Below are positions 12,597-64,000 of a DNA stretch of 64,000 bases, one piece after another (within the stretch, counting starts at the first letter, position 1; the number at the start of each line of letters is the position of its first letter). Source of the stretch: Paragordius varius (taxonomy: Eukaryota > Animalia > Nematomorpha); assembly GCA_964247055.1 (NCBI GenBank), contig OZ176051.1, positions 15,133,085 through 15,197,084 of the forward strand, written 5' to 3'. The translations under genes were made by a program, and so were the position numbers. The notes beneath the pieces were generated by a model. It was not told where the DNA came from and did not search any database. It saw only the letters and a program-made list of their open reading frames with translations.

Positions 12597-14256
12597 ACTC
12601 CTATTTGTTTAGATTTTATTTTTCAGTTATCAAAAATTGTAGTTTTTTTCAAATTTTAGGTATTATATCTATCATAATAAATATAGTTATATGAAAAATA
12701 TTAGGAAGTTAATTAACCTATAAAAAAATACATAAATATAAATGCAGTAGAATTCTTGGGGCAATTTACTATTTCTCTATTCGTAAATGAAAAACTATTG
12801 AGATCTTAAAATCCCTCTAATAACAAGCAGAATTGCTAATTGCCATAATAGATGATATAAACTTTTTTTAAAATGCATACTTTACTTAATATTAAAGCAG
12901 CATAACAACACTTTCGCGTATAGAAAAAGAGTGTTTTTATAATCAGTCTATCAATAAAATGAAAAAAATTGTTTGTTGTCAGATCTAATTTAGCAAAAAA
13001 ATTTGACCTGAGGTGATAACACGAATTATATTAAAAAAAATTTAATTTTTAACAGGGTTTTTGCATGTTCAATAAAATAGATCTATTCGATTTTAGTTAA
13101 ATTTTTAGCAAAAGAATATTTTTCAAACATACATTTATTGATTAATCAAAGATATAAAACTGCTAAATATTAGGATTTTCGAGTACATCGGCAGTTAAAT
13201 AGTATATTTCTTTTACATCTGTAATAGACAACAAATTTCCCTGCCACTCGGGTTTTTTGCATCTGATAGTTAATATCATTTTAACAGAAAATTCAAAACA
13301 ATAATATTTATAATTTAGCTAAAAATGTGCGGCGTTTAAAAAAATATTTTTTTTATGTTTTTACCTTAGTAAAATTTAAAATTGCATTAAAGTTCTTTGG
13401 ATATTTGTGTGCTTTCTCGTCCTACCGATAGTTTATGATAAATTACATTAAAAATGGAAAATAGCAATCTAGAAATCTTAAGACAAAAAGCCAAAACTTT
13501 ATTAAACCTAAATTATCACTATATAATTTATTTAACAATATAATTATAATTGTAAAATAGATAATTAATTTGGTTACCAATATTTATCTCATTTTTTTGC
13601 TTGCAAAATAAAAATTGTATTTATCTTAAATTTTTTCCGTACGATTTCAATTTACAATAAAAATTCAAATTTATACGGACAAAACGTAAATAAATAAAGA
13701 CAATGATACTTTATACTTGATTATTTTATATAACTCATTGTTTAATTTTTCGATTCAAATTATACTTGTATCCCAATAAAAATTATAAAAAAAGCCAAAA
13801 TATGTAAATTAAATTTCGTTTTGAAAAAAAAGTTCCATGTGAAACTATTTCGACGCCATTTTTATTTTACAAAATTTTTGCAAAATATCCTAATTATTTG
13901 CTAACGTTTAAAGTATTGCTAACTTTTTATTTAAATTAAATATAACATGATAGAAATAGGAAAAGTGGTTTATTTAGTATTACTTTTCAATTTAGCCAAT
14001 TCACATATATTACGTTGACTAAATTTTTACTAATGAAAATAAGAAATATCAGGTATATTTGAATTAAAATTTTTTATATATTTCGGTTTATTAATGTTAT
14101 AAGAGTGCAAATTGACATGGTTGTGATTCCTTCATATTTTTTATAGTAATTAATTTTAACAGGCCTGAAGTGGCCAACTACCCCAATTTAAATTGAAAGA
14201 CTAAAAAGTGTTATATTTAAGTGTAAAATTGCAAAATATAAATTTAAAATTGGGAG

Positions 14257-15683
14257 AATTTAGTGCCAGTACCCCAGAAATCATAACATTTAACGTTCGT
14301 AGCGATCCGTGTCAATTTACATTGGGTGTCACCTTATTTGGTGGAAATCAATTACGTAAACATTTTTTTCAACCATCATCCATGTATTTGTCCTTAAAAA
14401 ACATTTGAAAATTTATATTTTTTGGATTATACCAGAAGATATAAGTGATATTGTTGTTATCATATCAAAAACGGGCAAAACTAGCCTACTTTTTTGAATC
14501 AAAAAAATAAGATATCAATGAAATCAAATGTACTGTTTTTGGATTTTTTAACAGATCCTTTTCACTATAAAATTTTGTAAAAAAGTATGATAATATTTTT
14601 GACTAATTATATATTTCCTCTAGGTTATACTATTTTGCCACATTTACAGTGTTACAACTACGACCCTAAAATTGCTAAATTTTTCCAAACATACTTAAAA
14701 ACATTTTTAAAGCCATAATCTAGCTTCCTATTTAATCATTGCCTCGGTCGAATCACAAATTAGATAAATTCCGAGTTGTCTCGATGTTAGCTGCTGCGTA
14801 AAATGTGGGAATCACGAATAATGTTTTCTTATTGAGTTAACCTCGGTAGGCGAGACAATCTAAAACTTCAATGATTATATCAAATTATACCGACAAATTT
14901 TAAAACATAAAGACAAATGATTTTTAAAAAGGCAGCTCTCTTTTTGTTAACGTGATTGTTTTAATATAAGACATTGTTTTTGAATTACAAAGTAAATATT
15001 TAAATTATACGGACAAAACGTAAAAATAATATCGTGTTGATGTTAGCAATTTGCATCTCTGTTTCATACTTTTTTATTTAGAATAATGACTAAATTTAAA
15101 AAATTCAGTTTAAAAAGAATGGTTGTCTTTAAAAAAAATATTTGTCGATTTAAGCTTTGTCGGTATAATTTCAATTCTTATTCACTGCTAACACAATCAA
15201 TTTTCTTTTTACTAATGTAAGGATTAATTTATATAAGATAAAGTAAGGATTCAAAAAGTCTGTCTCTCAAAGAAGATTTGTTTTTAGGTTTTTATGATTT
15301 GTCTGTATTTTGTAACATATTTTTTCAAATTTTGTACAGGAGTCAATTATGCGGGAGCTATGCCTATGGCTATGTTAAGTACAACAGATGCAGTCGGAAC
15401 AGCAATTACTCTAGGAGCGATGCCTAATACTGGAGTAATAACCTTAACAAGCAACACTACTGTTCCGGCAAATTACACGGGCTTTAATTTTGAAGCAGTC
15501 CTGGCTCCTGGTGCCGCAGTGACGCCCAAAGTATTTGATGTGAGCTTATAATTTCTGTTTTACAGTAAAATTAATTAAAATTATTCAGAGAAAATGTAAA
15601 ACCCTAAGGATATTTTTTTACAGTTGGGTATACTTTATCAATTAGAATTAACATTGGCAGAAAACGCAACATATTTTGGATAG
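14257..15683 (+). CDS. Partial multi-exon gene of unknown product (candidate exons 14257-14355, 15340-15539, 15624-15683)
   Basis: AG/GT-flanked, GC-richer, phase-compatible segments: FSASTPEIITFNVRSDPCQFTLGVTLFGGNQL; GVNYAGAMPMAMLSTTDAVGTAITLGAMPNTGVITLTSNTTVPANYTGFNFEAVLAPGAAVTPKVFD; LGILYQLELTLAENATYFG*. Start not found. Confidence 0.5.
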
Positions 15684-17070: not shown

Positions 17071-18559
17071 ATTACGCATTTCCCACCTCTCTTAATTCGG
17101 TGCAAAATAATTTTTTTGTGATGCCCTACCGGAAATTTACAAATATTTTTGTAATTTGTGATTCGACTTTTATTTAAATAAATGAGACTTTTTACCGAGT
17201 GTCTCTATTACTGTAGACACTATTGCTTGTTTTTTGATATGTGTAATGCTTCTTGACTTTGATTTCGAGTTCAGTACCATCCAATAAGCCTTACAGTTTA
17301 TTGTCTTTTCATTTGTTAGACCAAGCGCCCATCTCACATTAAATCACAATTTTTTTTATTTTCTAAACCATGCTTCTCACAATCTGTTGATGCCGCAGTT
17401 TTTTAAGGTACAATTCGACATATATAGATATACATATTTTCTAAACGATATAAACAGGACGCTATCTTTTGGCAGAATCAATTTGTATGTGTTAGTAGTA
17501 GAATGTGAGATTATAAAATGAATCTGAGTCGAATTCATCGGCCGCATACTTTTTACTGAGGTGTACCCTTAGTTAAACTGCTAAAAATTATGACTAAACT
17601 GGTGTGGAGCAAGCTTCGCCTTTAATTAAAAGTTTCTTTATATATATTGTGAAAATTAATCTCTGTTTAAAAATTATAATATTCAATATTTAATATTTGA
17701 TAGTTATGGTCAACTTCCACATTCTGCATAATAAGGGCTCTGATTTCTTACAATTTTATTTAAATCAATATATAAAACATGCTCAAAATGTTTACTCGTA
17801 CCCAATTTGTGTGATAGTTAAGAACATATTTTATATGTGTTCAACCAGTGGTAAACATTACTTTTGATTGGAAGCGTCAAATACTAATTCCGTATACGAT
17901 AAAACAAACAGTAATGTTTTTTAAGGTGTCACATAGATAATTATTTTGTGTAATATAAACTAACAAGGAGAATATTTTTTGCTAATGGCAGTATTTGCGA
18001 ATAATTAGGAATTTCTAAAAGGCATTCTAAGTAGTATCAGGGAAAATATTTTATATCGATACAACAAATGAGGGGTAATTTTTTTAAATAACCAAATTTT
18101 AAAAATACTTGAATTCATATAATATCGTTTTTGGTTATAAATAAAAAAATCAATATACAGTATTGAAATTATAATGACAAAACGTTAATATTTTAATCTA
18201 TAAGACTATAACTTAATTTTTCACTTATCTATTTAATTACAATCGTAAAATATAGAATCGATTCTGTTAGTTCTGTATGTCTTTACATTTTGCCATTTAA
18301 AACAATGAGTTATATTGAAATAAATTAGGATTTAAAAAGTACGGTTGTCTTTTAGAAAAACATATTTGTCTATATATTTTCACGTTTTGTCCGTATAATT
18401 TCAATTTTTACTGTATTTCAAAGTTAAATCGGTATGCATAAAATTTTGCAGTAATCTTTTTTGTTACAATAATACTGTTTACTGCTTAACACTTTTTTAA
18501 CCTCATAAATTTCATCTCAAACTTTTCGCCGCCATATTTTTATTTGTATTTAGTTATAT

Positions 18560-21460: not shown

Positions 21461-22175
21461 ACCTAACCAAAGAAACCAATCTTTCTTTACAACAGCTAAC
21501 AGCTCTCGCTTACAATCGAATAAACCGGAGATATACCTTCGAAAAAGAAATAAATCGACAACGATCATTGCTATAATAATAAAATATGTATATCAAAAGA
21601 AACATTATACAACAAAGTTGATATTTATTATTTTTAAAATCATCTTTTTCTCTATCTTTAAAACTTATACTAATATCTAGATGCCCAATATTGTATTAAT
21701 ATGAGCTTTAATGTTTGAGAACGCTAATAAAACATTCAGAAGGGTAGTTTATTTACAAGCTGTCACTATATCCATCGCCTTTAGAAATGAATTAGTTTTG
21801 TCATTATTATATTTGAAAGGACCTGAATGTTTTTCGGGATATCTTCAATATTTTAGAATTTTGAAGATAACGCTGTGATTTTAATCAAAATTGATGGAAT
21901 ACCGGGGGGGGGGGGAAATTATATTATAAACCTTCTGATTACCCATATTATAACATTTAAATAAAAATGTTATATGAAAACCGATGCTTTTAAAGTTATC
22001 ATATATGTATTGATAAGTTAGCTCACTTATAATTTTTAAATTAACGAACCAGGTGTATTCAACAGTTTACCTTTGCAATCTTTTCTAAGGCTGATATGTT
22101 CGATCCTTGCAACTTTTTTAACATCATCGTCTTTTTGCTGCTCAACATCCATATATATATTAATATTTTTTGATA

Positions 22176-22415
22176 GAGTAATTGAAATTATACGGGCAAA
22201 ATTCTAAAATATAAAGACAATATTTTTTCTAGCACAACCCTACTTTTTCAAACCATAATTTTCCTTATCTACTTGATAACAATAATGTAATTGATTGGAC
22301 TAATAATTTACTTACATCTTTATGTTCAACCCAAAATAATAAGGAATGTTCAGTGTCTTTTAGAAAATTTGTCTTTATATTTTTACCTTTTGTCCGTATA
22401 ATTTCAATTTTTACT
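22176..22415. mobile_element. Tc1/mariner-like MITE (family with TIR consensus CAGTAAAAATTGAAATTATACGGACAAAA)
   Basis: Inverted arms AATTGAAATTATACGGGCAAAA...TTTTGTCCGTATAATTTCAATTTTTACT. Solo arms also near 13670, 15005, 15120-15180, 18340-18412, 47485-47545, 47830-47890 and 61075-61135. Confidence 0.65.
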
Positions 22416-24030: not shown

Positions 24031-24319
24031 TATATTTGGTTATAAAATCTTTTAAAAATCTGTGTTTTAAGATAGACTCAACAATCTAATGTAAAATAAT
24101 TTATCAATTTACTAAGTATTATAACAAAATTATTTTAAAAGATTTATTCTATTAAGCATAGAGAATGGTTAAATAGTGTCAATTATAATATGATCTTGGA
24201 ATATCAGAAAATGCATTGCATGACACAATTATGAAACGACACATTTTATTTAAAATAAAGTTTGAAAACAAAATATTACAATTTTTTTATATGAAACAAT
24301 TTTCAATTATGCACATTTT

Positions 24320-25449
24320 TCATATTTTTGCGTGAGCAGATTTAATGTGTATAGCAAGTGAGCCTTTATGAGAAAATTCAGTTTTACATATCGGACATGA
24401 TATCTAATATGTTCATGAACAGATTTAATGTGGGTTGCAAGTGAGTCTTTTCTAGAGAAATCTGTCTTACAAATCGCACATGGATATCTAATTTGTTCAT
24501 GAACAGATTTAATGTGTGTTGCAAGATAACTTTGTTTAGAAAATTCATTTTTAAATATCGGACATTGATATTTAATATGTTCATGAACAGATTTAATGTG
24601 CGTTGCAAGATAGCTTTTTCTAAAAAAATCTGTTTTACAAATCGGGCAAGGATATTTAATTTGTTCATGAACAGATTTGATGTGTGTTGAAAGATTGCAT
24701 TTTAGTGAAAAACTAGCCTTACATATCGGACATTCATATTTAATTTTTTCATGAACAGATTTAATGTGCACTGCAAGATAGCTTTTGTCAGATAGTTTGC
24801 TTTTACAAATCGGACATGGATATCTAATTTGTTCATGAACAATTTGATATGTGTTATAAGATGGCCTTTATCAGATAAGATCTTTGAACAAATTTCGCAC
24901 GGATATTTTACATGTTCATGAACAGAACGAATATGTTTGGTCAAGCCGCTTTTAGCCATATAATTTTTATCACATTTAATACATCGATAATTATAATCCA
25001 ATTTTGAAGAGTTTAAAGATTTAATAGTTTATTACTATTTTTAGTGTTTATATTATTAATATTTATATCAACATTTGTACTTATCGGAGTAATTTTATTT
25101 ACGTTTTCCGATGGTTTTTTTAGCAAAAGATCTAAAGGTTCCGTCTGTTCTCCTAAATCAATTATCAAGTCGTGTTTGTTGATTTTGGGAACGTTATCAA
25201 TTTTATCATCCAAATTATTATTTTGTTGAGTATTTTCGCTTTTATGTTCCCTTAAATAACAAAGGTTATGGAAAGAAGCGCTCAGAATTCTCCGTATATC
25301 ATCGTTTGTAAAGTCTTCAGTTTCCAACATATTAATGAAGGATGCCGGTTTACATGGATCAATATAATTTTCTTGTTGATTTTTGAGTTCTACTTTATAG
25401 AGCTTAGTATCGAGATCACACCAAAGTTTGTAAGTTGAGTTACCGAAAT
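24320..25449 (-). pseudogene. Tandem C2H2 zinc-finger gene (8 fingers) with at least 3 frameshifts
   Basis: 84-nt units Y-x-C-x2-C-x12-H-IKSV-H-E; 1-nt deletions near 24840 and 24398; frame change near 25005-25015; finger 6 has C>F; AG acceptor at 25451-25450. Confidence 0.85.
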
Positions 25450-44900: not shown

Positions 44901-47274
44901 GAATGGTAAGTACTGTTTATATTTTTAGCAAGTACTACAACTTCTTATTGTGATGCTAGGCTAGAAAATAATCTCTAAACTATGTGCATTTAATTCCTCT
45001 TTTAGTTTCTACGTTTTTGTATGATTCAATTTTTATTGTATAATTGAGTGTGACAACGATTTGCGTCTTATTATTTTAAAATCTCTAACAATGATATAAA
45101 ATTTTTTAATAAAAGTGGCTGCATTTAAAAAAAATAATCAATTAGTTCTAAATATTGTTCTATTTATTCTCTACTTAAGAGATTATGTTATTATTTTCTG
45201 GCATGTGTGTATTTTTTGGGTTTTTCTTCAAAGGAAGGCTCATTTCCAACTTATAAAGTTGGCCTAGTAATTATAGATAATGTAGACTCTTGGGGGACGG
45301 TCACCCAAACAAGGATTCATTAAGATAATCTGATAATGTTAAGCCATATACAGTTAATAATTTTGGCATTGAACCGGTAATTTATTATTTAATAATTTTT
45401 TAATATATTATGTATAATTTGGTTTGCGAACGTAAATAGAATTTTTATATGAACTTTGTACTAAGCATCCTATTAATAGAATTTTTAAATATCATATAAC
45501 TATCTGCATAATTACATATAAATTATTTTTTAATCATGTATATGTTATCAAAATTATTATTCATAAATATTCTGTGGCAAATTATTGGAGGTTAAAATTG
45601 ATTTTTATAACATTAAAAATAAAGTTATAGGGACAAAATTTATATAAAAGACAAATTAATTTCATGATATTAAAAAGAACAAAGATAAAATTATAGATAT
45701 ATAATATTTTTTCCTATACAGACAAATATATAATACATTGTTTTAACCAATTTATAGAATAGAAATGTATATTGGTAATATACAATTCATATACGATTGT
45801 TATTAAATGTCTATATTAGGAGGGTTTTAAAAAATATGGGCTATCTTTTGAAAAACATTTGGCTTTATATTTTTACGATATCAGTATAATTTACTATTTA
45901 CTGTATATTTCTATAACTTAAATTTTTATATGCTGCATTTTATTTAATGAAAAAGATTCCGCCCTAATAGTTTATTGTTTAGGAAAAATTATATCAACTT
46001 ATCAATATTGATTAAACAATATGTATATATTATATTGCAATTAGCTAAAATTATATGAATTTATTATATGAATTTTCGATTACTACAAGTAATCCTTGTC
46101 AAACAATAAAATTAAAATATAAACTAATATTAAATATTTAATATAGTTAATAATAACAATCAAATAAAAATACTCGTGAGATTTATAATAGACAATAAGT
46201 TTTGGACAATTATTTTTAAAAAATGACATCTAAATCTAAATGCAATTCTTAATAATCCTGGAATTTACATAATGAATTATTTTGCTTAATGTGATTTGAG
46301 CTACATTCGTAGCCAATTTCATCCGTTGTACTAAAAATGGCGTATGAGAGGTTCGTTATCGTAATGGAACCGATATAAAAAGGTTTATTATCATTGCTAA
46401 CTAAGGAGAAATAGAATTGAATTAAATAAATTTTGCAGAATCTGCAATTAATACACAGAATGAGACAACAGCTTTACGAACTATGTTTCTTTAAAATATG
46501 AGAAATAAAGGAATTACCATAAACTACAAATCATTTTCAGTGAACCTTGATTAATTAATCATTATAAATGTTTACGAATTGAAGATTTGAGTAGCACTGA
46601 TCATTCCTCACATTCGATTTGCAAACCGTGTTTTAAAACGGCTTTATAACGGATATTTATGAAGCAAAATCTTTGAGTGATTTTACAACCATGAATCAAA
46701 CATTTGAATTCAGAAACTTTAGAAGTCAATCGATATATAAAAATTTTGTGTTTGTTACCTAAATTAAATACCCTAATCTTCATTGAAAGGTAGCTATGTA
46801 ATCAGAATAATAAGAAAATATATATTGAATACCATGCAAAATAATACATCGATTAGGATACATAATATTTTACAATTAGGCGGAGTCAAGCCTAATAACT
46901 GGCCATGTTTATTTAATAATTTATAACATTATATATAAAAACTTTAATTATAAAATACTATATAGGCCTATCCATTTCAGCAGAAGAAAATCAGACAAAA
47001 GGTTGACAAAATACAAAGATTTATTTTAATTTAGTTATTTGGAATCTTCTTTCCAAAAGATTGAATTTATTGGAAACGCCCGATGATTACAATGTCCTGA
47101 TAGGTAAACATTAATAAACAGTTAAATTAAAGTTCAAAAAATTAAACAGACAAAACGAAAAAATATGAAGTTAAAAACAACCACACTTTTTTATATCTTA
47201 AATTATTCTATAAAAATCTTTACAATCGTAAAATACATAATTGAATGTATTATTACAATTCTATATTATACTTT

Positions 47275-47435: not shown

Positions 47436-49604
47436 AACTCTAAACCGTACATTTTGATATTTAAAAAAAATCAAGATTTACAAAGTATGGTTGTCTTTAG
47501 AAAAATTATTCTCTTTTTTTTCCATTTTGACCGTATAATTTCAGATTTAGTGTAATTATATAAAGGAAATATATTATCTTTTATGAAAACAAACAGAAAA
47601 TCCGGTATGTGTTTTTAACTTATGTTGACCATTTACCCATATGTGTTAAATTAAGATGCAAAATTTAGTCCCATTCATGCGCAAAAATACAGGAAAAAAA
47701 AATAAAATTTGAGGCCAAAAAAATATTTTCCAATAACATAAATGATTATTGTGAAATATATAATATAGTGTGCTATAATATCTTTATTCCCTATTTTTGA
47801 ACGTCAAACTTTTATTAAAAACAGTATAAAAAGTATGGCTGTCTTTTTCAAAATTGTTTATCTTTAGTTTTCACTTTTGGTTTTATAATTTTGTGCGGTG
47901 CCAAATTTAGGAGCGACCAATTGAAATACAGTATATAATACTTAAATTATAATATCTTCTAAAAAAAGTAGCATATATTATTAACCGCTAAAAAGAGAAT
48001 TTTTGAGTATATACATAAACAATAAATTTTGCTAATTTACTGAATCGAGTTTTTATAAATAAAAAGATGATAGTATTAATGTTAGAAATAAGATATTATT
48101 TTCGCTTTATGAATTTATCCAGAATTTTATTAGGCATATACATTTTAAGTAAAGCTATTTTACTAAAAATTTATAAATATGATTTGTCAAATTTGGATAT
48201 GATAAAGAGTTTAGCTAAAATTTTAATTTATTAGGAGCGTTTAATATTACTCATATTTTTTTATTAAGCAGTGGCCCAATATAGAATAATTTTTACGCCG
48301 TTCGATGCAATTTATGCATTTTTAGCAATTATAATGATATATTTCTAAGAATATAGGTAAATATCTGTCTAACTTAGAAAGGCAATGTTTTGACTGAAAT
48401 TAGCCATTTTCAAGCAATAAATATATTGTAAGATCGGTGACTACGGTTTTTATTTAAGTACAGTAAATAATAAAGTAAAATTAAGGAGCAAATATTTTTC
48501 TAGTAGGACGCTACAATTTATTAATACATAATCTTTTTAAAAAAATTTATAAATATAATTTTAAAATGGAATTGTTTCCTGTGTTGATATTAACAAATAT
48601 ATTCCTTATTTTGCGACACCCAACGATAGGAAATCACAAAAATTATAAAAAATATAAATTAAATAATATCATTAAATTGTAATTAATCTATATAACTCCT
48701 TATTTGGTCGACGGTAAATAGTTGAAACTGAAATTATACAGACAAAGTAAGTATTATGTAAGAAATATTATTAAGACAATAAATATTTTGATTTTATTAT
48801 GAAACTCATCATTTAAGCTGCAAAGATAATATACGTAATTATTCGTAATAAATAGTTTATGTTGGATGGTTAAATAATCTTTTATCTTATTGTGTAATTT
48901 TCAATAATTATTGTAATTAATGAGGAAATGTTTATTAAAAATACTTTAATTCTTTCGTCATTTATCTCGGGAGTTTCCAATTACATAAATTTCTTTGTCC
49001 TATTGATAATTCATACCTCAAGTGAGGACGTGTAGGCACCCTGTTGAATAAATTAAGCCTTATTATTATATAAACTATTACATTTGATCCCAAGAATCAT
49101 TTTCTTAGAATATTATTCTATATATTACTAATATTTAACAGAATAACAAAACATCGCCTGGTAATATTATTAAATATATAATCATTTTTATATATATATA
49201 ATCTATAAAGCTCAATTTACGTTTATAATTTATCAAATATGTCCAAATAATTATTAAATTTAGTGCATTTTCATATATTTCAGCTCCTACTTAAGAAAAT
49301 AAATGTCAAGTAATGGAAAAAGATATCATTTCTAAGGCTATTATATCCATATAATTCTGTGTGTAGCTTCAACTTTCAACATTTCTTATTAGAAATCTTT
49401 AAAGAAACACATATTCAATATTTTTTGCAAAAGATTTATTTTGTTTACACTAAAGGGAAAGGTTTTTATATAATTTAAAAATTATTTTAATTACCATTTT
49501 ACTAAATTAAACATATATTTTCCGAATTATGGTGTATTTTGCCTATCTGGTTAAACAGAAAAATGTATTTTATATAATTTTTTCCATAAATACCAAATAT
49601 AAGA

Positions 49605-52600
49605 ATGTTGCTAGAAATCAATTTTATAAACTTCGTTCTTGTTTTAGTAACGGTTTCCATGCAGTATTTTCTCTCAAAAATATCATACAACTCATTTTAC
49701 ATCCCAACTTTTGTTGATAAAAAAAAGAACATTCCAATACCGGATCAGCATCATACCATTTCGTCACAAATCGCAAAACGAACACAAAGAAATAAACTAA
49801 ATCTTGATCATAGCAAAAAAGTAATTTATCCAAAAAAACAAAATAGTCCAAAAAAGAGTGGGAGCTTAGTTGGTCAAACTGCTGCATTAATTGGGGGTAA
49901 AAATTAGTTATCAGCTAAAACAATAGTTGGATTAGTTGAAATTTGTTAAAATGGTACAATGTATATACATATAATATAGCTGCGGCGACAGGTAAATTTT
50001 TAATATTTTTATTTTTATAACATTTATTGATAAAAATATTTACAACAGGTGTGATTGGTGGTATGTTATTTTATTTATTAAATTATATTCAATTAATAAA
50101 TTCCTTTTGTTCCAGACAGATATTGTATCTTATAGTTTTTTGTCTATACTTTTTCTAACAGAAAAAAAAGTGGTTAAGTCAGCGCAATGCATTAAATATC
50201 TTTGAAAAGGTTATAAACAGTTGACTATTTGGCTATATTTTATGACCCCTAAACTTTTACTATTAATTTTTTGTCGTAAGTTTATAATATTAAAAGCGTG
50301 TCAGGGATTTCAAACTTTAACAGGTTAATATTATCGAAAGGGGTATTATATTTTAAAGAATGGATGGATTAACACATGGTTTATTTCTACTCTTCTGTTC
50401 GAGTGCCATACTTTCCCCGTCTCTTTCTCATATATTTCGAATCAAAGCTTATCATTTATTTTGAGGACTGAGTTGGTATATGTAGTACTTATAAATTAGT
50501 TTTTAATGTTGATTAATTAGTATGCGATCTTGTAAAAAATTTAACTTTCTGTAAGTTTGCCAATATTAATGTCATTTTTCATTTTAGCCGTCGTGGGAGC
50601 CGGAGCTTCGGAAACACCAGAAGTGATAGCTGTCGCCCAAGGCGTCAATGATATGGAGTTGGGTGAAGATTTAGCACAAAATCGCGCAAACAACGAAAAC
50701 CCAACTGTTGAAGAAAATAGTATTGAAGAACGACAAGAAAATCCAGAAAGAAACTCAAGATCTGAGCATGAAACTAATCATCCTTCTCAGTCGACTTCTT
50801 CCAATAGTTACATATTGACTATTTTAAATATTGAAATATACGGACAAACCGTAAAATAAAGACAACTATTTTTTTGAAAAAAAAACCATTTTTGCAAAAT
50901 ATATAATTGAATGTGATATATAACGCTAAAAAATTTAAAATTTTAAGCAAGATAAGTATTTTAAATTTTATTTAAAGAAAAGGGATATCTTTTGTAAAAA
51001 ATTGTTGTCTTTATATATCTGCGTTTTGTCCGTATACATTCATTTACTGTATAAATAGCAATTTAGTTTATATTTTCCAGATTATGAGATTATTAGTTGT
51101 TGCATATCTATCGATAATATTGTTTTTTAATTAGATCCACCAGCGGAGAATGCATTGGATACAGACGATATTGGTAATTTTGAAAATAAAAATAAATGCG
51201 GTACAAATGAAAATACAACAAAACTTGAAATTATATTATGGACAAAACGTCAAAATATAAAAAAAAATTTTTTATCTAAAAGACAACCATATTTTTAAAT
51301 TAAATTTAAGCAGCTATTTAGTTACAATTGTAAAATATAAATTGATTGTGCTAGTTCTATATATCTCTATTTCACACTCCATTCAAATGAGTTTTATTGA
51401 AATAAATCATGATTAAAAAAGTATAATTGTCTTTTAGAAAAAGATACTTGCCTTTATACGTTTTGTCAGTATAATTTCAATTTTTACTGTAAAAACAATA
51501 GTTATATTGTATTATTTAGCTGATAGACCAGAACACACACCAGAAGAAATCGAAAATGGTTAAATTTATATCGAAATTAATATAAGACGCAATTATATTT
51601 AACAATTTTTAAAATAACATAGCTCGAGAAATCGTGGATCGATACGGTATAACTATCACCATATTATATTAATATTTATCATTTGAAGGAATATATCATT
51701 ATTTAAATGTGTATAATGATAGGAATGTATCATTTAAAAGCAGGTTTTAATTTTTATAAATAATTTTTAAATACTATTATTAGATACTACATAATTTCTT
51801 ATATATTTAGCTCTATACAATATAGAAACTGGTAAAGCAACTGAATACACAAATCAATTTATTTTATTCTAAACTTCATATATTTATTTAGGGGCAGAGA
51901 ATGTGGTGTATGAAGCGGAAAATATAGTTACGAGTAAGTTTTTATAAATTACTAATAATCTAGACACAGAAATCAAAATTATAGGATTAACGCAAACATC
52001 TAAAACTAATATTTTTTTAAGATAGCAATACTTTTTAACCATGTGAATTTTGGCTCCCAAAATATAGAATGTAGATGTATATTGGTGAGAGGCTCTATTC
52101 AAATATCATGGTTTAAAAGAGTGCGACTGTCTTTTTTTAAAAAATATTTATCTTTTAATTTTAACGTTTAATATGTTTAATGCAATTTTATAACTAAAGA
52201 CACCAGGTTTCTTGGAAGAGGTATGGAAAATATTTATACATAATAACGAATAATATTTGCTATTTAACAGATTTAACATGAATTTTAATTATTTTCATTA
52301 CATTAATATTTTTGAGCGCTTGCATAAATCCAACCGTTAAGCCATGTAATGCATAATTTCGTTTAAACTGAAATTCTTTAAGAGACATATATCCGACCAA
52401 TTTTTAGAATGTGTTTTATGTTGACAATTTGTTTCATAACAATATTTGACCGGAAAAACAGAAATTGGACATGCATAATATATTTTTATATGTTAAAAGT
52501 CAATGAAGGATGAAAATGGCATTTTAACGTCGCAGTTTACAAAATGGGCGCCTTCGGCTAAATTTAAAATCATTAAATACTCCAACTTAAAAACGCTTCC

Positions 52601-55600
52601 TTAATGTTTTATGATTAATTTAATTTATTTTTGAAGCGTTTTAACAGAAACTAATAATGCTAAAAATATACAATAAATATTAATAAAAACAAAACTATTA
52701 ATGAACTTGTTTAAGTTTAATAGTGATTATTGCAATACAAAACATGTAAATTGGTAAAGTGATCATAATAAAAATCAAAAAAGCCTATTTTTCGTGATTT
52801 TCGAATATATGGCAACAAACTTCAAACTTTAGAAAAAATTTATAAAGTTACTAGAAAAACAATAATGATAATCTAAATCACGGTGTCAACACAATTCTCG
52901 GGCGCATACTTATGAGAATTAATATAAAACAGATGATCCTCTAATAAAGCAGCTCTCTGCATCGTTATTTTGATAAATTTAATAATTTTTTTTAATCAGC
53001 AATAGATAACATAAATCAGGGTGTCATTCGTGGGTTATATTAATTTATATAATTATTAATAAATATTTATCAAATTCTTAAGACTGTATTGCCAACACAA
53101 TAAATTTTTTCTAATTTATTGCCCTAAAAAATTTGACAGAGAACTATTACTTCTTATCAATATCTGGATTTGCAAATATTAAGTGGTCGCATATAACGAC
53201 TCAGCGGACTTCATGTAGCACCTTGGACACCATTTAAGATTTACATATGATCCAAATGTTTAGATTTAATATTTATTAACTAGAATAAATAACAGAGTAA
53301 AATGTATTTAACAATTGCTGTTATAATTGATACAAAATAAATTTTTGATTCCCTAACTTTTTTGATTTTACATTCTTCTACTTTATTCGAAAATAACCGA
53401 TTACTATCCGCATAATTAAAATACCGGTAACCATAATTTATAAATAGAAATTTTTAAAATCCGCGATTTTTATGGATTTGAAGTTTAATCAAAAAAATTC
53501 CAAATGGTTATAGTTGTATATATTTCTAAAATTGTAATTAAACCATTCATCATATTATTAACGCTTACTATATTTCTAAAAGCTAAAATTTTTTTCATAT
53601 TTATTAGTCTTCTAATGTAAATCAAATTCAGAAATTGAAATTATACGGACAAAATTTAAAATATAAAGATAAATATTTTTTCATATGACAACCATAATTT
53701 TAAATAATTATTTAAAATATCATTGTTTTAAACGGTAAAGTATGAAATAAAGATGTAAATTGGTAAAACAATAAATTTATTTTACAATTGAAATAAATAA
53801 TTTTTATAAAATAATTAAGGTTTTTAAAAAGTATTATTGTGTTTTGAAGAAAAACTGTTTTGGAAATTTTTACGATTTGTCCGTATGTTTTCAATTTTAA
53901 CTGTAAGTTACGACCAGCTTTTATTACAACGATTAAATGGCATTGTCATTATTTAAAAATTTAAATACTGTATGAAACATTAAACCATTTTTATCCACTT
54001 CATTATGCGCACAAGAGTAGGTGGCATTTTTACAAACTTGCTTTATAAGTAAATAGGGGTCTCATCCATATCTTAAATGAGTAGTCGCAAAAATGACAGT
54101 CTATAATTTCATATATATTTTTAGAATATTTCGAATTAATCTAATCATAGAATTTTCTCTCATATCTCTTGTGTTAAATCAATATTATAATTTTAAATTT
54201 GCTAATTGTTTAAATTATGATTTTTTAGTTTTACGCATGACTGGGGTAAGACTTGAAAGCCATTTGCAAGGTAATGAAACAATTTAAACTTTATATAGCT
54301 TTAGGTGAATCAAGTATGCATGTATTGATAATCAATAAAATTAGATTTCATACAAAGTAATTATATTAATGAACATACAACAACTATTATAAAGCTTAAA
54401 ATACAAGTTTTTGAAAAACACCCATATTGTATACCTTGATTTTTTTAATACATTTAGAATAACAAATATATGCAATTGAGTTTGTTACCAATTAATACAT
54501 TATTTTTTTTGGATCCCAAAACGAGTTATTTTAATACAAGGTTTATAATATGGTTGTCTTTTCAAAAATGTTTCCTATATTTATGTTTTGTCGTTGTATT
54601 TTACCTTATTCATCAAAAATAATTGCATGGCAGTTTTAAGAGATCAAATAACAAGTAATATATAATATTATTTAATCATTGTGCCAAATTTCGGGGCAAT
54701 GAATTTATATAAAATAAATCAAAAATTTGGATAATATCTTGTAAAACGATTTTTTTGCATACTTTATAAAATAATTGATAGGAATTATTTATGAGATTGT
54801 TATCTACTCACATTCAATTATCCTATATTTGTGCGAAACTAATGCTTGCAATAAATTAGGGAAATTTTTAAGTTTAAAACGTTAAATCGGCCCAACCAGT
54901 CTGAAATAGCTGATTTCTAAAAATTATGGAATCAGATGTATGATGCTATAAATAGGATTCACTTTGTTTTAATTAGAAACAAAATTTTGAACACAAAAAT
55001 CGTAAAGTCCTTTACAGAAATAATTTTATAATATAATCTGTCGGGATGTAAATTTTACGGCATAAAGTATTATAGAGAAGTCAATTAGCAGTCATAAGTC
55101 AATCAAAAAGATAAATTAGGTGTCAAAAAGAGGCGCTTAACAGGTACAGCGTTTAGAGCATAAATGATGGTTGCAAATTAGAAGAAGTTTTAAAGAATAA
55201 ACAAGTTTTGTGGTATAAAAAGCGGAAAATCACAATATATAAAACCATGGGAAAATGATACCACAATAAAATACGTTTTAAAGAAGAGATGATTAAAAAT
55301 AGGGAGACTTATAAAGAAAATAAGTAAGCTAGGTAAACTAGTTAATTTAATAAGACGGAAAATGCTACAAATAATGACGGGATATAGCGAAAATTGAAAT
55401 TTTCCAGAAAAAAATAACTAGTTTATGGAATCAATTTTATAAACTTTGATATTCTTAATACAACCCGTCCTTTGGTTGGAAAAATTGCAAAGTTAATTAT
55501 ATATTTTTAGTTATTATCTAGTTTTCTAGAAAAGAAGGGTTTTCTAAATCATGGTTTTATCTATTGATTGTCTTTTTTTACTGTAACTACAAGGATCTTT

Positions 55601-57989
55601 AATTAATTACTATGAAGTTGTTTGTACTACCTGGAAAAGAAATGGGTTTATAGCAGTTAGATATCAAAGGTTTAGATAGATCTTTCACAGAGTCTATTCA
55701 TTGTTCTGTAAAAAGAATGAGTTTATGGACAATTTTTTTTTGTAGTAATCCTTGTATAACAGGCACCAAAGTAATTAAAGGCAAAGCTTTAAGCCTATTA
55801 TTGTTTTATATTAAATGTTTTTAAGTAGATATATGAAAAAGTAAAATATGTATGATGTTGATCTTATTCTTTAATATTTATATTTTTTAATCGAAAAACA
55901 TCTGGCTTAAAATGTTGCCTTGAATGTTATTCACCATAAGGGTAAATGCCCTTGGGTATAGAAGACAGAATTGTATAATGATTTTTAAATAATTGGAATC
56001 CCTGATAGTATATTAACAAACGATAAATGATATAATAAAGTGTGTTGGTAAAACTTATAACCAGAACTATGTTTCATGTTATAGTTGAGCCGATTATGTG
56101 CGTTAATTATAAACCTTTTCGATTAAAAATAAACAATATACTTTCAAGTAGCGACGACGAGAAAGGCTGTTGAATAACTAGGAATAACCTGGGAAAATAT
56201 GAGAGATGATAAAATTTAGGATGCATAATATAGTAATAGCGAAGGTATTAAAAAGGAAGAGGAGTTGATTATATTTATTTTCTTAAAATTTTTTGTTATG
56301 CCAGGTGCTGAATTTTGGGGCCTTGATTCACACACTGATATTTTAAATGATTATTTTTTTAATTAGATTTACGGCAACTTCTAGAAGGTATTTATATGTA
56401 GTTAAATATAAAATATTACAAACAGGCGTTGAGGACGGTTTTCAAGGTATTTTCGCAATATAGCATATTTTAAATTAATTAACATAAATTAAAAATTTGC
56501 AATAAAACATTTAAATTATTATCATAATTTGTGTTTTTTATATTAGTTCTTGAACAACGATTCAGTGGTACGTTTTTTTAGACAATGCGTAATGGAAATA
56601 ACTGAATTTTTAAGCTTTGTATAAAATTTTACCCTAGACAGTACATCCGCCACTCTAGGTAATTAAAATTAATCATTATATTTTAGCCAACGATCAAAAT
56701 ATAGTGGGTAAGATAATATTTGTATAATAATTTTTCATTATACCATGGCAGAAATATCCGAAGACATTAATGGTATAATTTAAATTCTAGTTCCACATAA
56801 TTAATAAATATATTGATGTTATTTTTTATAATAATAGACGCAACAAACGCTGAAGAATGTAAGATTATCGAAAATTTATTTTATGTTAATTTTGAACTTA
56901 TTTTTTTACATTATTTTCGTATCCATAACCTGGTATACAACTCTGCCGGTGTCATCAGCATTAACCTTTGTGTGATTTATCTCTTTGATGAAGTCATCTC
57001 CTTATTGGTCTTCTTGTCATTTTGGCAAAAGAGTGAGAATCTCTCTTTTCGACCAAAACTAACAGTCTAATCTCTATTCTATCGATTTAACATCCGTTGA
57101 ATATCTATCCTTTACTTTCCTTTTCGTTCAACCAATTTTTGTAAAAATGACGCCGAATAAATGCCTATGTCTATGACCTGATTATTTTGTCTCTCATTAA
57201 ATAAATAATTTTATCGCATAAAACACTAAAGTTTTAAAATTTAACCAAATTTATTTAATTATTTACATCGGTTTGATGTTTGCAGATTTTTACTTTAAAA
57301 AATCTGCTGCCTTTTATGTACTAATTATTATAGATAATATTCATGTATTATTCTTCATTGACCTCGCCGTTCCACTTTGATAACCCATTTGTTAAAGTTG
57401 GTACTTAAGCTAGTGTTATAATTAAATCCCAACTAACCTTTGATCAGTTTTCGCTATCAACTAATGCTTCGTTCAAAATTAAAAAATAGTTCGTATCTTA
57501 GTTTTATTCGATTGAATAATAATTAATTTAAAATAAATTACTGAACTAAATGTAAATTGGCAAAAAATTTAAGACTTATTTCTATATAAAATGTAACGTA
57601 ACCCTGATATTTTTTTGGGCTGGTAAGTTATCTTGCCAAACACAGTATTAACAGAAACTAAATTTTTGACTGCAAATTTATACAATTTTTTTATACATAT
57701 ATATATTTGAAGACATGGAGGCTATTGGTAATTTTAAATCAGCATAATGACATCTTTCACAACGATTTTAAATTAATAAAGTTTTATAACTTTTTGCTTT
57801 TCAATCGGTTTTTTTCGAATATACCATCATATTTTATTTTTTTCGAAAATGATTTAATATATACGTTTTTAACTGACAATTTTTTTTATGAAATAATTAA
57901 AATATAATTTAATTTTGCTTTCTAAATTCTTCCAAATTGAGGTATTTAATTAAATTTTCATATTAGATGAAGACAATAGAGAAATATGA
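49605..57989 (+). CDS. Predicted micro-exon gene, up to ~339 aa: signal-like N-terminus, glycine zipper, acidic linker, 7-aa helical modules
   Basis: Exons: 49605-49896, 49980-49991, 50049-50060, 50588-50806, 51135-51173, 51520-51558, 51811-51831, 52200-52220, [52536-52556 GC donor], 53000-53020, 54229-54270, 54299-54313, 54345-54356, 54634-54654, [55120-55143], 55303-55323, [55763-55780 GC donor], 56367-56387, 56426-56446, 56547-56567, 56638-56658, 56687-56707, 56752-56772, 56838-56858, 57967-57989 (stop). All internal exons are AG-flanked, a multiple of 3, phase 1-1 and stop-free. Bracketed exons are weaker. Confidence 0.75.
50830..51049. mobile_element. Tc1/mariner-like MITE in an intron of the micro-exon gene
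   Basis: TATACGGACAAA...AAAGACAAC arm inverted as GTTGTCTTT...TTTTGTCCGTATA; ends ACTG|TA. Confidence 0.7.
51215..51489. mobile_element. Tc1/mariner-like MITE, intronic
   Basis: Same family; right end TTTCAATTTTTACTG|TA. Confidence 0.65.
53629..53903. mobile_element. Tc1/mariner-like MITE, intronic
   Basis: CAGAAATTGAAATTATACGGACAAAA ... TTTGTCCGTATGTTTTCAATTTTAACTG|TA. Confidence 0.7.
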
Positions 57990-58239
57990 CTTGGTAAAAG
58001 ACGATGAAGAAAACAACATTAATTTTTTAACATTTAAGATTTTATATTGTGTATATAGATTATATAAAATGGTGTCAATAAATATTAAATATATTCATTT
58101 TTTAGTGCCTTTTATGGTTAAAAATTGAAATACAAAAATATATAAATCGTTTATAGTCCATTATTTTGGTACGACTTGAGTTGTATTGAAAAGCTCTTTC
58201 TAGATTATAAAAGGTTTGAACTCGAGTACACTAAATATG

Positions 58240-59995: not shown

Positions 59996-61327
59996 TAACA
60001 TTGTAAGTCATCCTTTTTTTCAATAAATAGCGGAAACGGAAATATAAATAAAACTTAACCATATTTCAACCAAAATAATCGGGCTCAAGTATTGTAACTC
60101 AACACATTATCCATATAAAAGTTTCCTTATTAATTGACTGCCATTTAATTTATTTTGAAATTTTTGTTTTAAAAAATATTGGTCAATTCAAAGGGATATA
60201 AAAATGAAATTATTAACGATCTCATTTATAAATCAAAGATGATAAAAGCTTTTTAGTGATTTAATGTTAAAATTTTACAAACCTCAGGTTGAGTTTCATA
60301 AAATATCTTTGTTTAGTGGCATTTTAAATGAAAAGCGTTCACCTATAAGTTTTCCCTAAATAGAGATTTGTAACAAATTATGATCAAATAGATATCCTGA
60401 AAAGGGTGTGGCAGTACTCCTTTCCGCCACTGTCCACACAGACGACCCCTACCGCCTTCCAACGCTATTACACGCCTCAAAGCAAGGGGACTTTATATTT
60501 TTTGAAAATAGCCTAAATGCTGCCAATTACAGCAAACAGTTTTAAGCGGAATATATAACTTGAATAATGACTATTAAATATTATTATCTTAAAATGGAAT
60601 CATTAGAGTTAGACATGTAAATTTTTGGAATTCAAATATATAATTAATGCAATTATATTAAGCTTTTGCCATCTCTTACATGCTTATGTTAGCCGTTCAA
60701 ATGCTTAGTCTGCTTGCCGAGATTAGCCAATCCCTGTTTACAATAGTTTATTTTTCTGCTAGAATACAACTCTCATTATAGTCAGATCAATGTTAATTTT
60801 GATCGTACAAATCAGGCATATCATTGTCTTTAATTCCGTTGTTGAATATCTATTAAATTGGCTTAATATTATATACTACGTGTATATAGTTCTATTATAA
60901 AAATATTTTTTTTTCAAAATACAATCATACTTTATACAACCATGATTTATTATATAAAAATTGTTTAATTTCAATTGTAAAATAAATGTATGATTTACCA
61001 ATTCCATCTGTATTTCATACTTTCAAGTTCAAAACAATGAGTTTTATTATAAAAAATTAGAATTTTAAAAGTATATCTCTTAGAAAAAAATATATTCTAT
61101 ATATTTTTACATTTTGTCCGTATAAATTAAATTTTTAATGTATTTGCCTTTATCAATTAAAATTTTTACTTTCATTTTAAGTGTAGGAATTATGGATACA
61201 AGATAAGGATCTTATATATTTCAACTTTAAGGTCGGCGCTGTTTAGTTTATTCCTAATATCATTAATGTAAAAAAGGATGGATTAAATTTTGAAAAAGTA
61301 TGGATAAATTATCATTTAAACCTAAAA

Positions 61328-64000
61328 GGTTAAGGGTTAGGGTTAGGGTTAAGGTTAGGGTTAGGGTTAGGGTTAGGGTTAGGGTTAGGGTTAGGGTTAG
61401 GGTTAGGGTTAGGGTTAGGGTTAGGGTTAGGGTTAGGGTTAGGGTTAGGGTTAGGGTTAGGGTTAGGGTTAGGGTTAGGGTTAGGGTTAGGGTTAGGGTT
61501 AGGGTTAGGGTTAGGGTTAGGGTTAGGGTTAGGGTTAGGGTTAGGGTTAGGGTTAGGGTTAGGGTTAGGGTTAGGGTTAGGGTTAGGGTTAGGGTTAGGG
61601 TTAGGGTTAGGGTTAGGGTTAGGGTTAGGGTTAGGGTTAGGGTTAGGGTTAGGGTTAGGGTTAGGGTTAGGGTTAGGGTTAGGGTTAGGGTTAGGGTTAG
61701 GGTTAGGGTTAGGGTTAGGGTTAGGGTTAGGGTTAGGGTTAGGGTTAGGGTTAGGGTTAGGGTTAGGGTTAGGGTTAGGGTTAGGGTTAGGGTTAGGGTT
61801 AGGGTTAGGGTTAGGGTTAGGGTTAGGGTTAGGGTTAGGGTTAGGGTTAGGGTTAGGGTTAGGGTTAGGGTTAGGGTTAGGGTTAGGGTTAGGGTTAGGG
61901 TTAGGGTTAGGGTTAGGGTTAGGGTTAGGGTTAGGGTTAGGGTTAGGGTTAGGGTTAGGGTTAGGGTTAGGGTTAGGGTTAGGGTTAGGGTTAGGGTTAG
62001 GGTTAGGGTTAGGGTTAGGGTTAGGGTTAGGGTTAGGGTTAGGGTTAGGGTTAGGGTTAGGGTTAGGGTTAGGGTTAGGGTTAGGGTTAGGGTTAGGGTT
62101 AGGGTTAGGGTTAGGGTTAGGGTTAGGGTTAGGGTTAGGGTTAGGGTTAGGGTTAGGGTTAGGGTTAGGGTTAGGGTTAGGGTTAGGGTTAGGGTTAGGG
62201 TTAGGGTTAGGGTTAGGGTTAGGGTTAGGGTTAGGGTTAGGGTTAGGGTTAGGGTTAGGGTTAGGGTTAGGGTTAGGGTTAGGGTTAGGGTTAGGGTTAG
62301 GGTTAGGGTTAGGGTTAGGGTTAGGGTTAGGGTTAGGGTTAGGGTTAGGGTTAGGGTTAGGGTTAGGGTTAGGGTTAGGGTTAGGGTTAGGGTTAGGGTT
62401 AGGGTTAGGGTTAGGGTTAGGGTTAGGGTTAGGGTTAGGGTTAGGGTTAGGGTTAGGGTTAGGGTTAGGGTTAGGGTTAGGGTTAGGGTTAGGGTTAGGG
62501 TTAGGGTTAGGGTTAGGGTTAGGGTTAGGGTTAGGGTTAGGGTTAGGGTTAGGGTTAGGGTTAGGGTTAGGGTTAGGGTTAGGGTTAGGGTTAGGGTTAG
62601 GGTTAGGGTTAGGGTTAGGGTTAGGGTTAGGGTTAGGGTTAGGGTTAGGGTTAGGGTTAGGGTTAGGGTTAGGGTTAGGGTTAGGGTTAGGGTTAGGGTT
62701 AGGGTTAGGGTTAGGGTTAGGGTTAGGGTTAGGGTTAGGGTTAGGGTTAGGGTTAGGGTTAGGGTTAGGGTTAGGGTTAGGGTTAGGGTTAGGGTTAGGG
62801 TTAGGGTTAGGGTTAGGGTTAGGGTTAGGGTTAGGGTTAGGGTTAGGGTTAGGGTTAGGGTTAGGGTTAGGGTTAGGGTTAGGGTTAGGGTTAGGGTTAG
62901 GGTTAGGGTTAGGGTTAGGGTTAGGGTTAGGGTTAGGGTTAGGGTTAGGGTTAGGGTTAGGGTTAGGGTTAGGGTTAGGGTTAGGGTTAGGGTTAGGGTT
63001 AGGGTTAGGGTTAGGGTTAGGGTTAGGGTTAGGGTTAGGGTTAGGGTTAGGGTTAGGGTTAGGGTTAGGGTTAGGGTTAGGGTTAGGGTTAGGGTTAGGG
63101 TTAGGGTTAGGGTTAGGGTTAGGGTTAGGGTTAGGGTTAGGGTTAGGGTTAGGGTTAGGGTTAGGGTTAGGGTTAGGGTTAGGGTTAGGGTTAGGGTTAG
63201 GGTTAGGGTTAGGGTTAGGGTTAGGGTTAGGGTTAGGGTTAGGGTTAGGGTTAGGGTTAGGGTTAGGGTTAGGGTTAGGGTTAGGGTTAGGGTTAGGGTT
63301 AGGGTTAGGGTTAGGGTTAGGGTTAGGGTTAGGGTTAGGGTTAGGGTTAGGGTTAGGGTTAGGGTTAGGGTTAGGGTTAGGGTTAGGGTTAGGGTTAGGG
63401 TTAGGGTTAGGGTTAGGGTTAGGGTTAGGGTTAGGGTTAGGGTTAGGGTTAGGGTTAGGGTTAGGGTTAGGGTTAGGGTTAGGGTTAGGGTTAGGGTTAG
63501 GGTTAGGGTTAGGGTTAGGGTTAGGGTTAGGGTTAGGGTTAGGGTTAGGGTTAGGGTTAGGGTTAGGGTTAGGGTTAGGGTTAGGGTTAGGGTTAGGGTT
63601 AGGGTTAGGGTTAGGGTTAGGGTTAGGGTTAGGGTTAGGGTTAGGGTTAGGGTTAGGGTTAGGGTTAGGGTTAGGGTTAGGGTTAGGGTTAGGGTTAGGG
63701 TTAGGGTTAGGGTTAGGGTTAGGGTTAGGGTTAGGGTTAGGGTTAGGGTTAGGGTTAGGGTTAGGGTTAGGGTTAGGGTTAGGGTTAGGGTTAGGGTTAG
63801 GGTTAGGGTTAGGGTTAGGGTTAGGGTTAGGGTTAGGGTTGGTTAGGGTTAGGGTTAGGTGGTGGTAGGGTAGGGTTAGGGGTTAGGGTAGGGTAGGGTT
63901 AGGTTAGGGTTAGGTTGGTGTTAGGGTTACGGGTTAGGGTTAGGGTTAGGGTGAGGGTTAGGGTTGACGGGGGAGGGGTCGGGGTTCGGGTAGGATACTC
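61328..64000 (+). repeat. Telomere, (TTAGGG)n
   Basis: Two variant units (TAAGGG, TTAAGG) at the junction, a perfect array 61355-63838, and a degenerate last ~160 nt. The G-rich strand runs 5'->3' toward the window end. Confidence 0.99.

Follow-up and report, generated by a model that had tools for sequence, protein, structure and literature searches.

A candidate subtelomeric micro-exon gene with heptad-length exons in the horsehair worm Paragordius varius

We describe a predicted micro-exon gene near a chromosome end of the horsehair worm Paragordius varius (Nematomorpha). It lies on the plus strand at positions 49605-57989 of a 64,000-nucleotide stretch of contig OZ176051.1 (assembly GCA_964247055.1, positions 15,133,085 to 15,197,084), which we refer to throughout as the window. 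An earlier note on this DNA had proposed a gene at this place that resembles the micro-exon genes (MEGs) of schistosomes and encodes a variable, secreted protein. Here we report that short, symmetric exon units are far more frequent at the locus than in shuffled DNA of the same composition and carry a codon-position signal in a single frame, and that the gene is very probably real. We further consider it likely that this protein-coding gene is intact, lineage-specific and of micro-exon architecture, and that it encodes a fast-evolving, membrane-anchored, acidic helical protein rather than a freely secreted one.

Results

The predicted gene

The model was built from a listing of all AG-exon-GT units between 49000 and 58500 whose length is a multiple of three and which are open in phase 1. 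It comprises 23 exons, 21 of them well supported and 2 doubtful. Micro-exons of 12-42 nucleotides (nt) account for 18-20 of these 21-23 exons, the lower figure counting the well supported ones and the higher including the doubtful pair. In order, the internal exons measure 12, 12, 219, 39, 39, 24, 21, 42, 21, 21, 42, (21), (21), seven times 21 and finally 15 nt, with the doubtful exons in brackets; all are multiples of three, and the introns, which span 28-1208 nt, are all in phase 1. The predicted coding sequence (CDS) of 1011 nt specifies 336 amino acids (aa), or 969 nt and 322 aa if the two doubtful exons are left out, and less if a donor internal to exon 4 is used. The splice sites are coherent across the model: 17 of 22 exons have G as their last base before the GT, the donor consensus is AAG/GTAA (the slash marks the exon boundary), and the acceptors, which are rich in T, close with TAG or CAG.

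The exon units are located where the earlier note had put them, in a gene that open reading frame (ORF) calling had missed, and both the exon model and the hydropathy profile bear out its description of a hydrophobic N-terminus, which indeed reads MLLEINFINFVLVLVTVSMQYFLS, encoded by a first exon that is larger than the symmetric phase-1 micro-exons downstream of it. Its proposal of a coherent protein of about 339 aa stands in that the spliced frame is open, while the length needs correcting to 336 aa, or to 322 aa once the doubtful pair is dropped.

The exon pattern exceeds chance expectation

Strict units of the form [CT]AG-N21-GT[AG], stop-free in phase 1, occur 11 times at the locus, compared with 1.88 +/- 1.30 times (maximum 7) in 500 dinucleotide shuffles. 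The earlier note had named such a composition-matched comparison as one that could undo its reading, and AG-N21-GT clusters are not equally frequent in the shuffled sequence. The opposite strand of the locus holds a single strict unit and six other 8-kb chunks hold 0-4 on either strand; at the locus itself, strict units of 18-20 and 22-24 nt number 0-3.

A selection of units that was blind to frame agrees with this. It relied on the splice-site pattern, on GC content and on there being no AG immediately before the acceptor. Nineteen of the 33 units chosen in this way have a length divisible by three, and 18 of these 19 are open in phase 1, as against 9 in each of the other frames. The units of other lengths are mostly nested within exons of the model, and control regions show no such bias.

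A codon-position test used a three-position nucleotide model for which exons 1 and 4 alone served as the training set. In the frame of the gene model the 20 micro-exons together score 91.1 bits, compared with 4.5 and 4.7 bits for the two remaining frames. The score in the model frame is positive for 18 of the 20, the exceptions being the doubtful exons at 54634 and 55303. Among 5000 decoy sets, each made up of 20 splice-flanked, stop-free units of equal lengths from the rest of the window, none reaches the observed values. A scan of the large introns for further exons gave no candidate above 3.2 bits, and one candidate exon, at 55099-55143, was rejected on account of a +1 indel in another sample.

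The exons in order

Exon 1 (49605-49896; 292 nt, ending in phase 1) is a 100-codon ORF in DNA of 25% GC, closed by the donor GGG/gtaaaa (8.1 bits). The hydrophobic N-terminus (aa 1-24) comes from this exon, as do a basic stretch (aa 25-85) and the start of a Gly/Ala-rich segment. Each of the two 12-nt exons that follow amounts to one turn of this second hydrophobic segment. Exon 2 (49980-49991; peptide AATG) is an island of 75% GC between the acceptor tatag and the donor gtaaat (8.7 bits), and its coding score is 7.6 bits in frame compared with 2.3 and 2.5 bits in the other frames; exon 3 (50049-50060; peptide VIGA) has the donor gtatgt (9.8 bits). Exon 4, which as modelled is 219 nt long (50588-50806), possesses the best acceptor of the gene (11.2 bits), lies in a frame that is open from 50545 to 50856, and encodes the end of the hydrophobic segment followed by an acidic tract. 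Exons 5 (51135-51173) and 6 (51520-51558), both of 39 nt, score 12.6 bits (against -0.1 and 0.7 in the other frames) and 13.8 bits in frame, respectively, and exon 7 (51623-51646; 24 nt) scores 5.4 bits.

Exons 8 to 21 are all either 21 or 42 nt long and together give 16 heptads. Exon 8 (51811-51831; 21 nt) supplies one heptad, and exon 9 (51892-51933; 42 nt) two, with 8.5 bits in frame and -4.7 and 1.1 bits out of frame. Exon 10 (52200-52220; 21 nt), with an AAG acceptor and a donor of 8.4 bits, is the sole solid exon that scores slightly better in another frame (1.7 bits in frame, 3.2 bits in the other). Exon 11 (53000-53020; 21 nt) has an acceptor of 8.2 bits, and a 30-nt version of it, extending to 53029, is likewise in frame. 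Exon 12 (54229-54270; 42 nt) contributes two heptads. The two doubtful 21-nt exons both show the splice-site pattern; that at 54634-54654 has 19% GC and scores -0.4 bits, and that at 55303-55323 has a weak acceptor and scores -1.5 bits. They are followed by an array of seven 21-nt exons of one heptad each (56367-87, 56426-46, 56547-67, 56638-58, 56687-707, 56752-72 and 56838-58), which are separated by introns of 38, 100, 70, 28, 44 and 65 nt. A 15-nt exon (57713-57727; in-frame score 3.5 bits, other frames -2.1 and 0.4) and the last coding exon (57967-57989; acceptor 7.9 bits) complete the chain, which ends in a TGA stop codon at 57987-57989 and is followed, 88 nt past the stop, by an AATAAA at 58077-58082.

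The predicted protein

The first 24 residues are hydrophobic (mean Kyte-Doolittle value 2.0) and lack a basic n-region. Residues 25-85 include 14 lysines and arginines and have a net charge of +11. The second hydrophobic, Gly/Ala-rich segment (aa 86-111, LVGQTAALIGAAATGVIGAVVGAGA; Kyte-Doolittle value 1.86) combines the end of exon 1 with the AATG and VIGA of exons 2 and 3 and the start of exon 4. After it comes an acidic tail with a net charge of -31, and the predicted protein contains neither cysteine nor tryptophan. Within the 16 heptads hydrophobic residues favour positions 2 and 6, with 9 of 16 at each (permutation p = 0.03), a periodicity (i, i+4, i+7) that is found in amphipathic and coiled-coil helices.

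Homology searches were made with the pieces encoded by exons 1 and 4. The exon-1 product gave no word-sharing candidate, no phmmer match in 1.84 billion representatives and no exact record in the assembly collection, and neither piece was assigned to a Pfam family; nor did the two pieces place the gene in a flatworm MEG family by sequence.

Variation between samples

The locus was compared over 49561-55550, a span outside which the seven-exon array at 56367-56858 lies, with two further DNA-like runs, one of the same species label and one labelled as a different organism. Of 385 differences the 40 best supported were considered, a number on which exon and intron rates are not rigorously comparable: 14 of the 40 fall in exons 1 and 4, none in the micro-exons and 26 in introns. 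All three of the exonic indel events shown are net multiples of three (+1 and +2 at adjacent sites; -3; +AAA), compared with two of the eight intronic events shown (Fisher p ~0.06). The in-frame +AAA in exon 4 is found in another sample, and after position 53025 a +AAA is present in both other DNA samples.

In contigs of the other sample of the same label, exon 1 carries 9 substitutions and two frame-preserving indels (within 49685-49847), and exon 4 up to 5 substitutions and the +AAA (within 50766-50804). These contigs stem from an allele that is very divergent or else from a closely related paralogue.

Transposable elements and the chromosome end

A miniature inverted-repeat transposable element (MITE) of about 230 nt, with the terminal inverted repeats ATATACGGACAAA / TTTGTCCGTAT, is present in at least 9 copies in 61 kb. 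Three copies sit in introns of the micro-exon gene, at 50824-51053 in intron 4, at 51237-51495 in intron 5 and at 53626-53900 in intron 11. Others lie at 13658-13703, 14993-15175, 18330-18416, 22170-22413, 45826-45907 and 61067-61143, the last of them 200 nt from the telomere. The family is extremely abundant genome-wide, with a summed word depth of ~1.8e5 in a DNA run. MITEs were considered as the origin of the introns and dismissed, since the copies sit within introns and never constitute a whole one. A recent origin of the 21-nt exons by duplication was likewise set aside: no tandem or direct repeats connect these exons or their introns, and the MITEs are the only repeats in the locus.

The micro-exon gene is the last gene before the telomere. 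A (TTAGGG)n array of ~440 copies extends from 61328 to 63965 on the plus strand and reaches the end of the window, with its G-rich strand pointing towards that end as expected of a chromosome terminus. From the stop codon to the start of this array is a distance of 3.3 kb, the figure that had been given before. The final 160 bases of the array (63840-64000) are degenerate, with units such as GGTGGTGGTAGGG and GACGGGGGAGGGG; errors in the reads at the assembly's end are the probable cause. We found no report of nematomorph telomere repeats in the literature.

GC content is ~25% across most of the window, and its long ORFs correspond only to transposon-like fragments, a C2H2 zinc-finger array and translated telomere. 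No structured RNA families were found in the window. The composition and the MITE load agree with those of a gordiid horsehair worm, the published gordiid genome having 288 Mb, 26.9% GC and 64% repeats, most of them DNA transposons (10.1101/2023.06.26.546503).

Elsewhere in the window, the C2H2 zinc-finger array occupies an ORF of 154 aa at 24307-24869 on the minus strand (Pfam zf-C2H2, E = 3e-14), which lies on an 84/168-bp tandem repeat. Two 21-bp tandem arrays, at 9704-9859 and 10285-10458, have 7.5 and 8.3 copies with 94-96% matches; their units are reverse complements of each other, and the arrays are spaced by ~430 nt. A duplicated gene pair, at 5788-7071 and 11098-12393, also has small phase-1 exons (30-42 nt), which share the codon-position signal of the micro-exon gene, and its peptide VEGEKARHGTLGV occurs twice.

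Discussion

A probable intact gene and its alternatives

Several observations weigh against an intact gene that makes a membrane-anchored helical protein, and they concern both the model and its use. The donor that closes exon 4 as modelled, after 50806 (ATA/gttaca), scores -0.2 bits and is comparable to a random GT; the in-frame donors within the exon score 6.2 bits (after 50662, the best) and 2.4 bits (after 50719), and the junction between exons 4 and 5 depends on either a poor or an internal donor. The model requires an intron of 28 nt (56659-56686) and others of 38 nt (56388-56425) and 44 nt (56708-56751), all of which are unusually short for an animal, and it includes two 21-nt exons (54634 and 55303) that have no coding support. 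Topology and helicity are based solely on hydropathy and charge counts. The run index contains no RNA run with words of exons 1 and 4, and the runs that do match contain the introns too and are in this respect DNA-like. The contigs of two presumed RNA sets of the same species label gave nothing on 49561-55550, although such a blank is no proof of absence, and five presumed RNA runs of that label contain none of the sampled words. Finally, among the best 40 of the 385 differences between samples, those in exons 1 and 4 comprise 9 nonsynonymous and 5 synonymous changes, so that constraint on the sequence looks weak; we take this as a hint that the large exons evolve fast.

A fortuitous arrangement of AG and GT dinucleotides in AT-rich DNA, with no gene behind it, could draw on the fact that loosely defined 21-nt units are frequent here (8.8 expected per 8 kb), but it is exceedingly improbable given that the count of strict units lies above that of all 500 shuffles, of the opposite strand and of every other chunk, that the enrichment is limited to one length and one frame, and that the codon-position signal appears in one frame only. 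The poor donor at 50806 also allows the locus to be read as two products or as a truncated gene. If no donor were used, the frame of exon 4 would run to a TAA at 50857-50859, which overlaps an AATAAA (50855-50860) inside the MITE that begins at 50824; exons 1-4 would then be a short gene, and the downstream chain either a minor isoform or a decaying remnant that the MITE has cut off. We nevertheless judge this quite unlikely, because a good in-frame donor (6.2 bits) is available after 50662, the downstream micro-exons are all open and have the codon-position signal, and the chain closes with a proper stop followed by AATAAA. An arrangement of an intact structure that is no longer used, be it a recently silenced gene or a pseudogene, or one that is used very narrowly, would account for an RNA search in which no run contains the locus and for differences between samples that are mostly nonsynonymous in exons 1 and 4. 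It is very unlikely in view of a frame that has stayed open over 21 or more exons in AT-rich, stop-rich DNA and of exonic indels that, among those shown, all keep the frame, and the RNA data sets, moreover, are few and small, and their silence does not prove absence.

An intact gene thus remains the reading we prefer, and it leaves room for more than one product. No alternative first exon was found for the downstream micro-exon chain, which would therefore have to join exons 1-4. With exon 4 open as far as the TAA and AATAAA and with donors inside it, both a short isoform and long isoforms could be made, and it is possible that the short one ends at the TAA at 50857, the MITE supplying an alternative end to the gene.

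A membrane-anchored or a secreted product

The earlier note saw in this locus an analogue of the schistosome MEGs, whose product would be freely secreted and diversified by regulated skipping of micro-exons at the interface of host and parasite. The structural definition of a MEG (PMC7653826), the hydrophobic N-terminus, the signs of fast evolution in exons 1 and 4, the subtelomeric position and the frame-neutrality of all internal exons are in its favour. We consider it unlikely as a whole: the second hydrophobic segment behind the basic stretch suggests membrane anchoring, micro-exons make up only ~45-47% of the CDS as modelled, a product of ~330 aa contrasts with 189 aa for the longest schistosome MEG protein (PMC10526429), the pieces from exons 1 and 4 matched no known protein, and the RNA searches came back empty. 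Secretion in particular is probably wrong as a description of the product. A hydrophobic segment (aa 86-111) that follows a stretch with a charge of +11 makes a membrane anchor at least as likely as secretion, and the composition of the protein suggests to us that an anchor is the more likely of the two.

According to the model that we favour, the N-terminal hydrophobic stretch would serve as a signal peptide or as a first membrane span. It would be followed by the Lys/Arg-rich stretch and then by a Gly/Ala-rich hydrophobic helix, which begins late in exon 1, runs through both 12-nt exons and ends early in exon 4. Next would come a strongly acidic tract, probably disordered, and a C-terminal amphipathic helix that is written one or two heptads per exon. 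The product would accordingly be an acidic helical, possibly coiled-coil, membrane-anchored protein of the secretory pathway or the cell surface. A basic stretch between two hydrophobic segments would fit a hairpin of positive-inside orientation, with the acidic helical domain outside; in an alternative topology, a cleaved signal peptide would be combined with a type I anchor. Transcription, the individual splice junctions, the membrane topology and any production of variants are what we infer from this model of the DNA. As the internal exons are frame-neutral and those of the C-terminal part are mostly 21 or 42 nt long, the loss of any one of them by skipping would disturb neither the reading frame nor the heptad register, and a design of this kind would permit variants that differ in length and in sequence.

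A more far-reaching proposal can be built on these features, although we hold it to be quite unlikely. Micro-exon genes may have a separate origin in a third lineage of parasitic animals, probably the horsehair worms, in which a 21-nt phase-1 exon would stand for a heptad and a 12-nt exon for one turn of a glycine-zipper membrane helix. Regulated skipping would then yield membrane-anchored coiled-coil stalks that vary in length and surface while frame and register are kept, and a subtelomeric variable surface protein would be diversified by splicing and not by gene switching.

Comparison with known micro-exon genes

MEGs have been said to be restricted to platyhelminths (PMC4350168), and aphids have a class of genes that resembles them in structure. 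We found no report of micro-exon genes in Nematomorpha in the literature, and the locus presents a MEG-like architecture in a phylum where it has not been described. If the architecture were to hold genome-wide in another parasitic phylum, it would be a striking case of convergent gene structure tied to parasitism. An entire class of surface or secreted proteins would then go unnoticed when such genomes are annotated by standard means; the published gordiid annotation lists 10,320 genes at a BUSCO completeness of 71.6% (10.1101/2023.06.26.546503).

In the structural definition of Olson et al. (2020; PMC7653826), a MEG has at least 7 exons, at least half of which are micro-exons (<70 nt and divisible by three), with a run of at least 4. 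The predicted model has 21-23 exons, 18-20 of them micro-exons, and a run of 16-18 consecutive micro-exons from 51135 to 57727. It therefore shares the operational definition of the MEGs of the tapeworms Echinococcus and Hymenolepis (PMC7653826), to which we found no sequence similarity; the definition being purely structural, membership is uninformative on descent.

A schistosome MEG consists of 10-20 exons that measure 6-81 nt, usually 15 nt, and whose lengths are mostly divisible by three; its introns are long, a signal peptide is present and the product reaches at most 189 aa (PMC10526429). As summarised in PMC4350168 from DeMarco (2010), small symmetric exons contain the greater part of the coding region of these genes, so that alternative splicing can produce variants. 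The gene described here shares with them many very short symmetric exons, much longer introns and a larger first exon with a hydrophobic leader, as well as an invisibility to ORF calling, transposable elements in introns, an absence of homologues outside the lineage and signs of fast evolution. It differs in that its micro-exons are mostly 21 nt long, corresponding to a heptad, instead of 15 nt, and in that two large exons carry over half of the predicted CDS; the micro-exon share is 47% (477 of 1011 nt), falls to 45% (435 of 969 nt) when the doubtful pair is left out, and would be ~55% with the donor after 50662. The predicted product is also longer, at ~330 aa as opposed to at most 189 aa, and its internal hydrophobic Gly/Ala helix and lack of cysteine make it probably membrane-anchored. 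The organism, moreover, is not a flatworm, and the gene is known here from a predicted DNA model. The likeness to schistosome MEGs that the earlier note had drawn is thus sound as regards the structural definition, and does not extend to any sequence relationship that we could find; with exon 4 as modelled, the micro-exons also fall short of most of the CDS.

The bicycle genes of aphids offer a second point of reference. They contain many micro-exons, nearly all of which start at codon position 2, evolve fast and elude homology search (PMC9168663; 10.1101/2020.10.28.359562). All internal exons of the horsehair worm gene likewise start at codon position 2 (intron phase 1), and a hydrophobic N-terminus is common to both. 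Bicycle proteins are defined by paired CYC (cysteine-tyrosine-cysteine) motifs, whereas the predicted product here is devoid of cysteine. The chromosome end itself differs too, with the telomere repeat TTAGGG in place of the TTAGG of insects. To this wider class of genes with many small symmetric exons the locus would add turns of a membrane helix and heptads of a coiled coil that are each written one per exon, and a position at the end of a chromosome.

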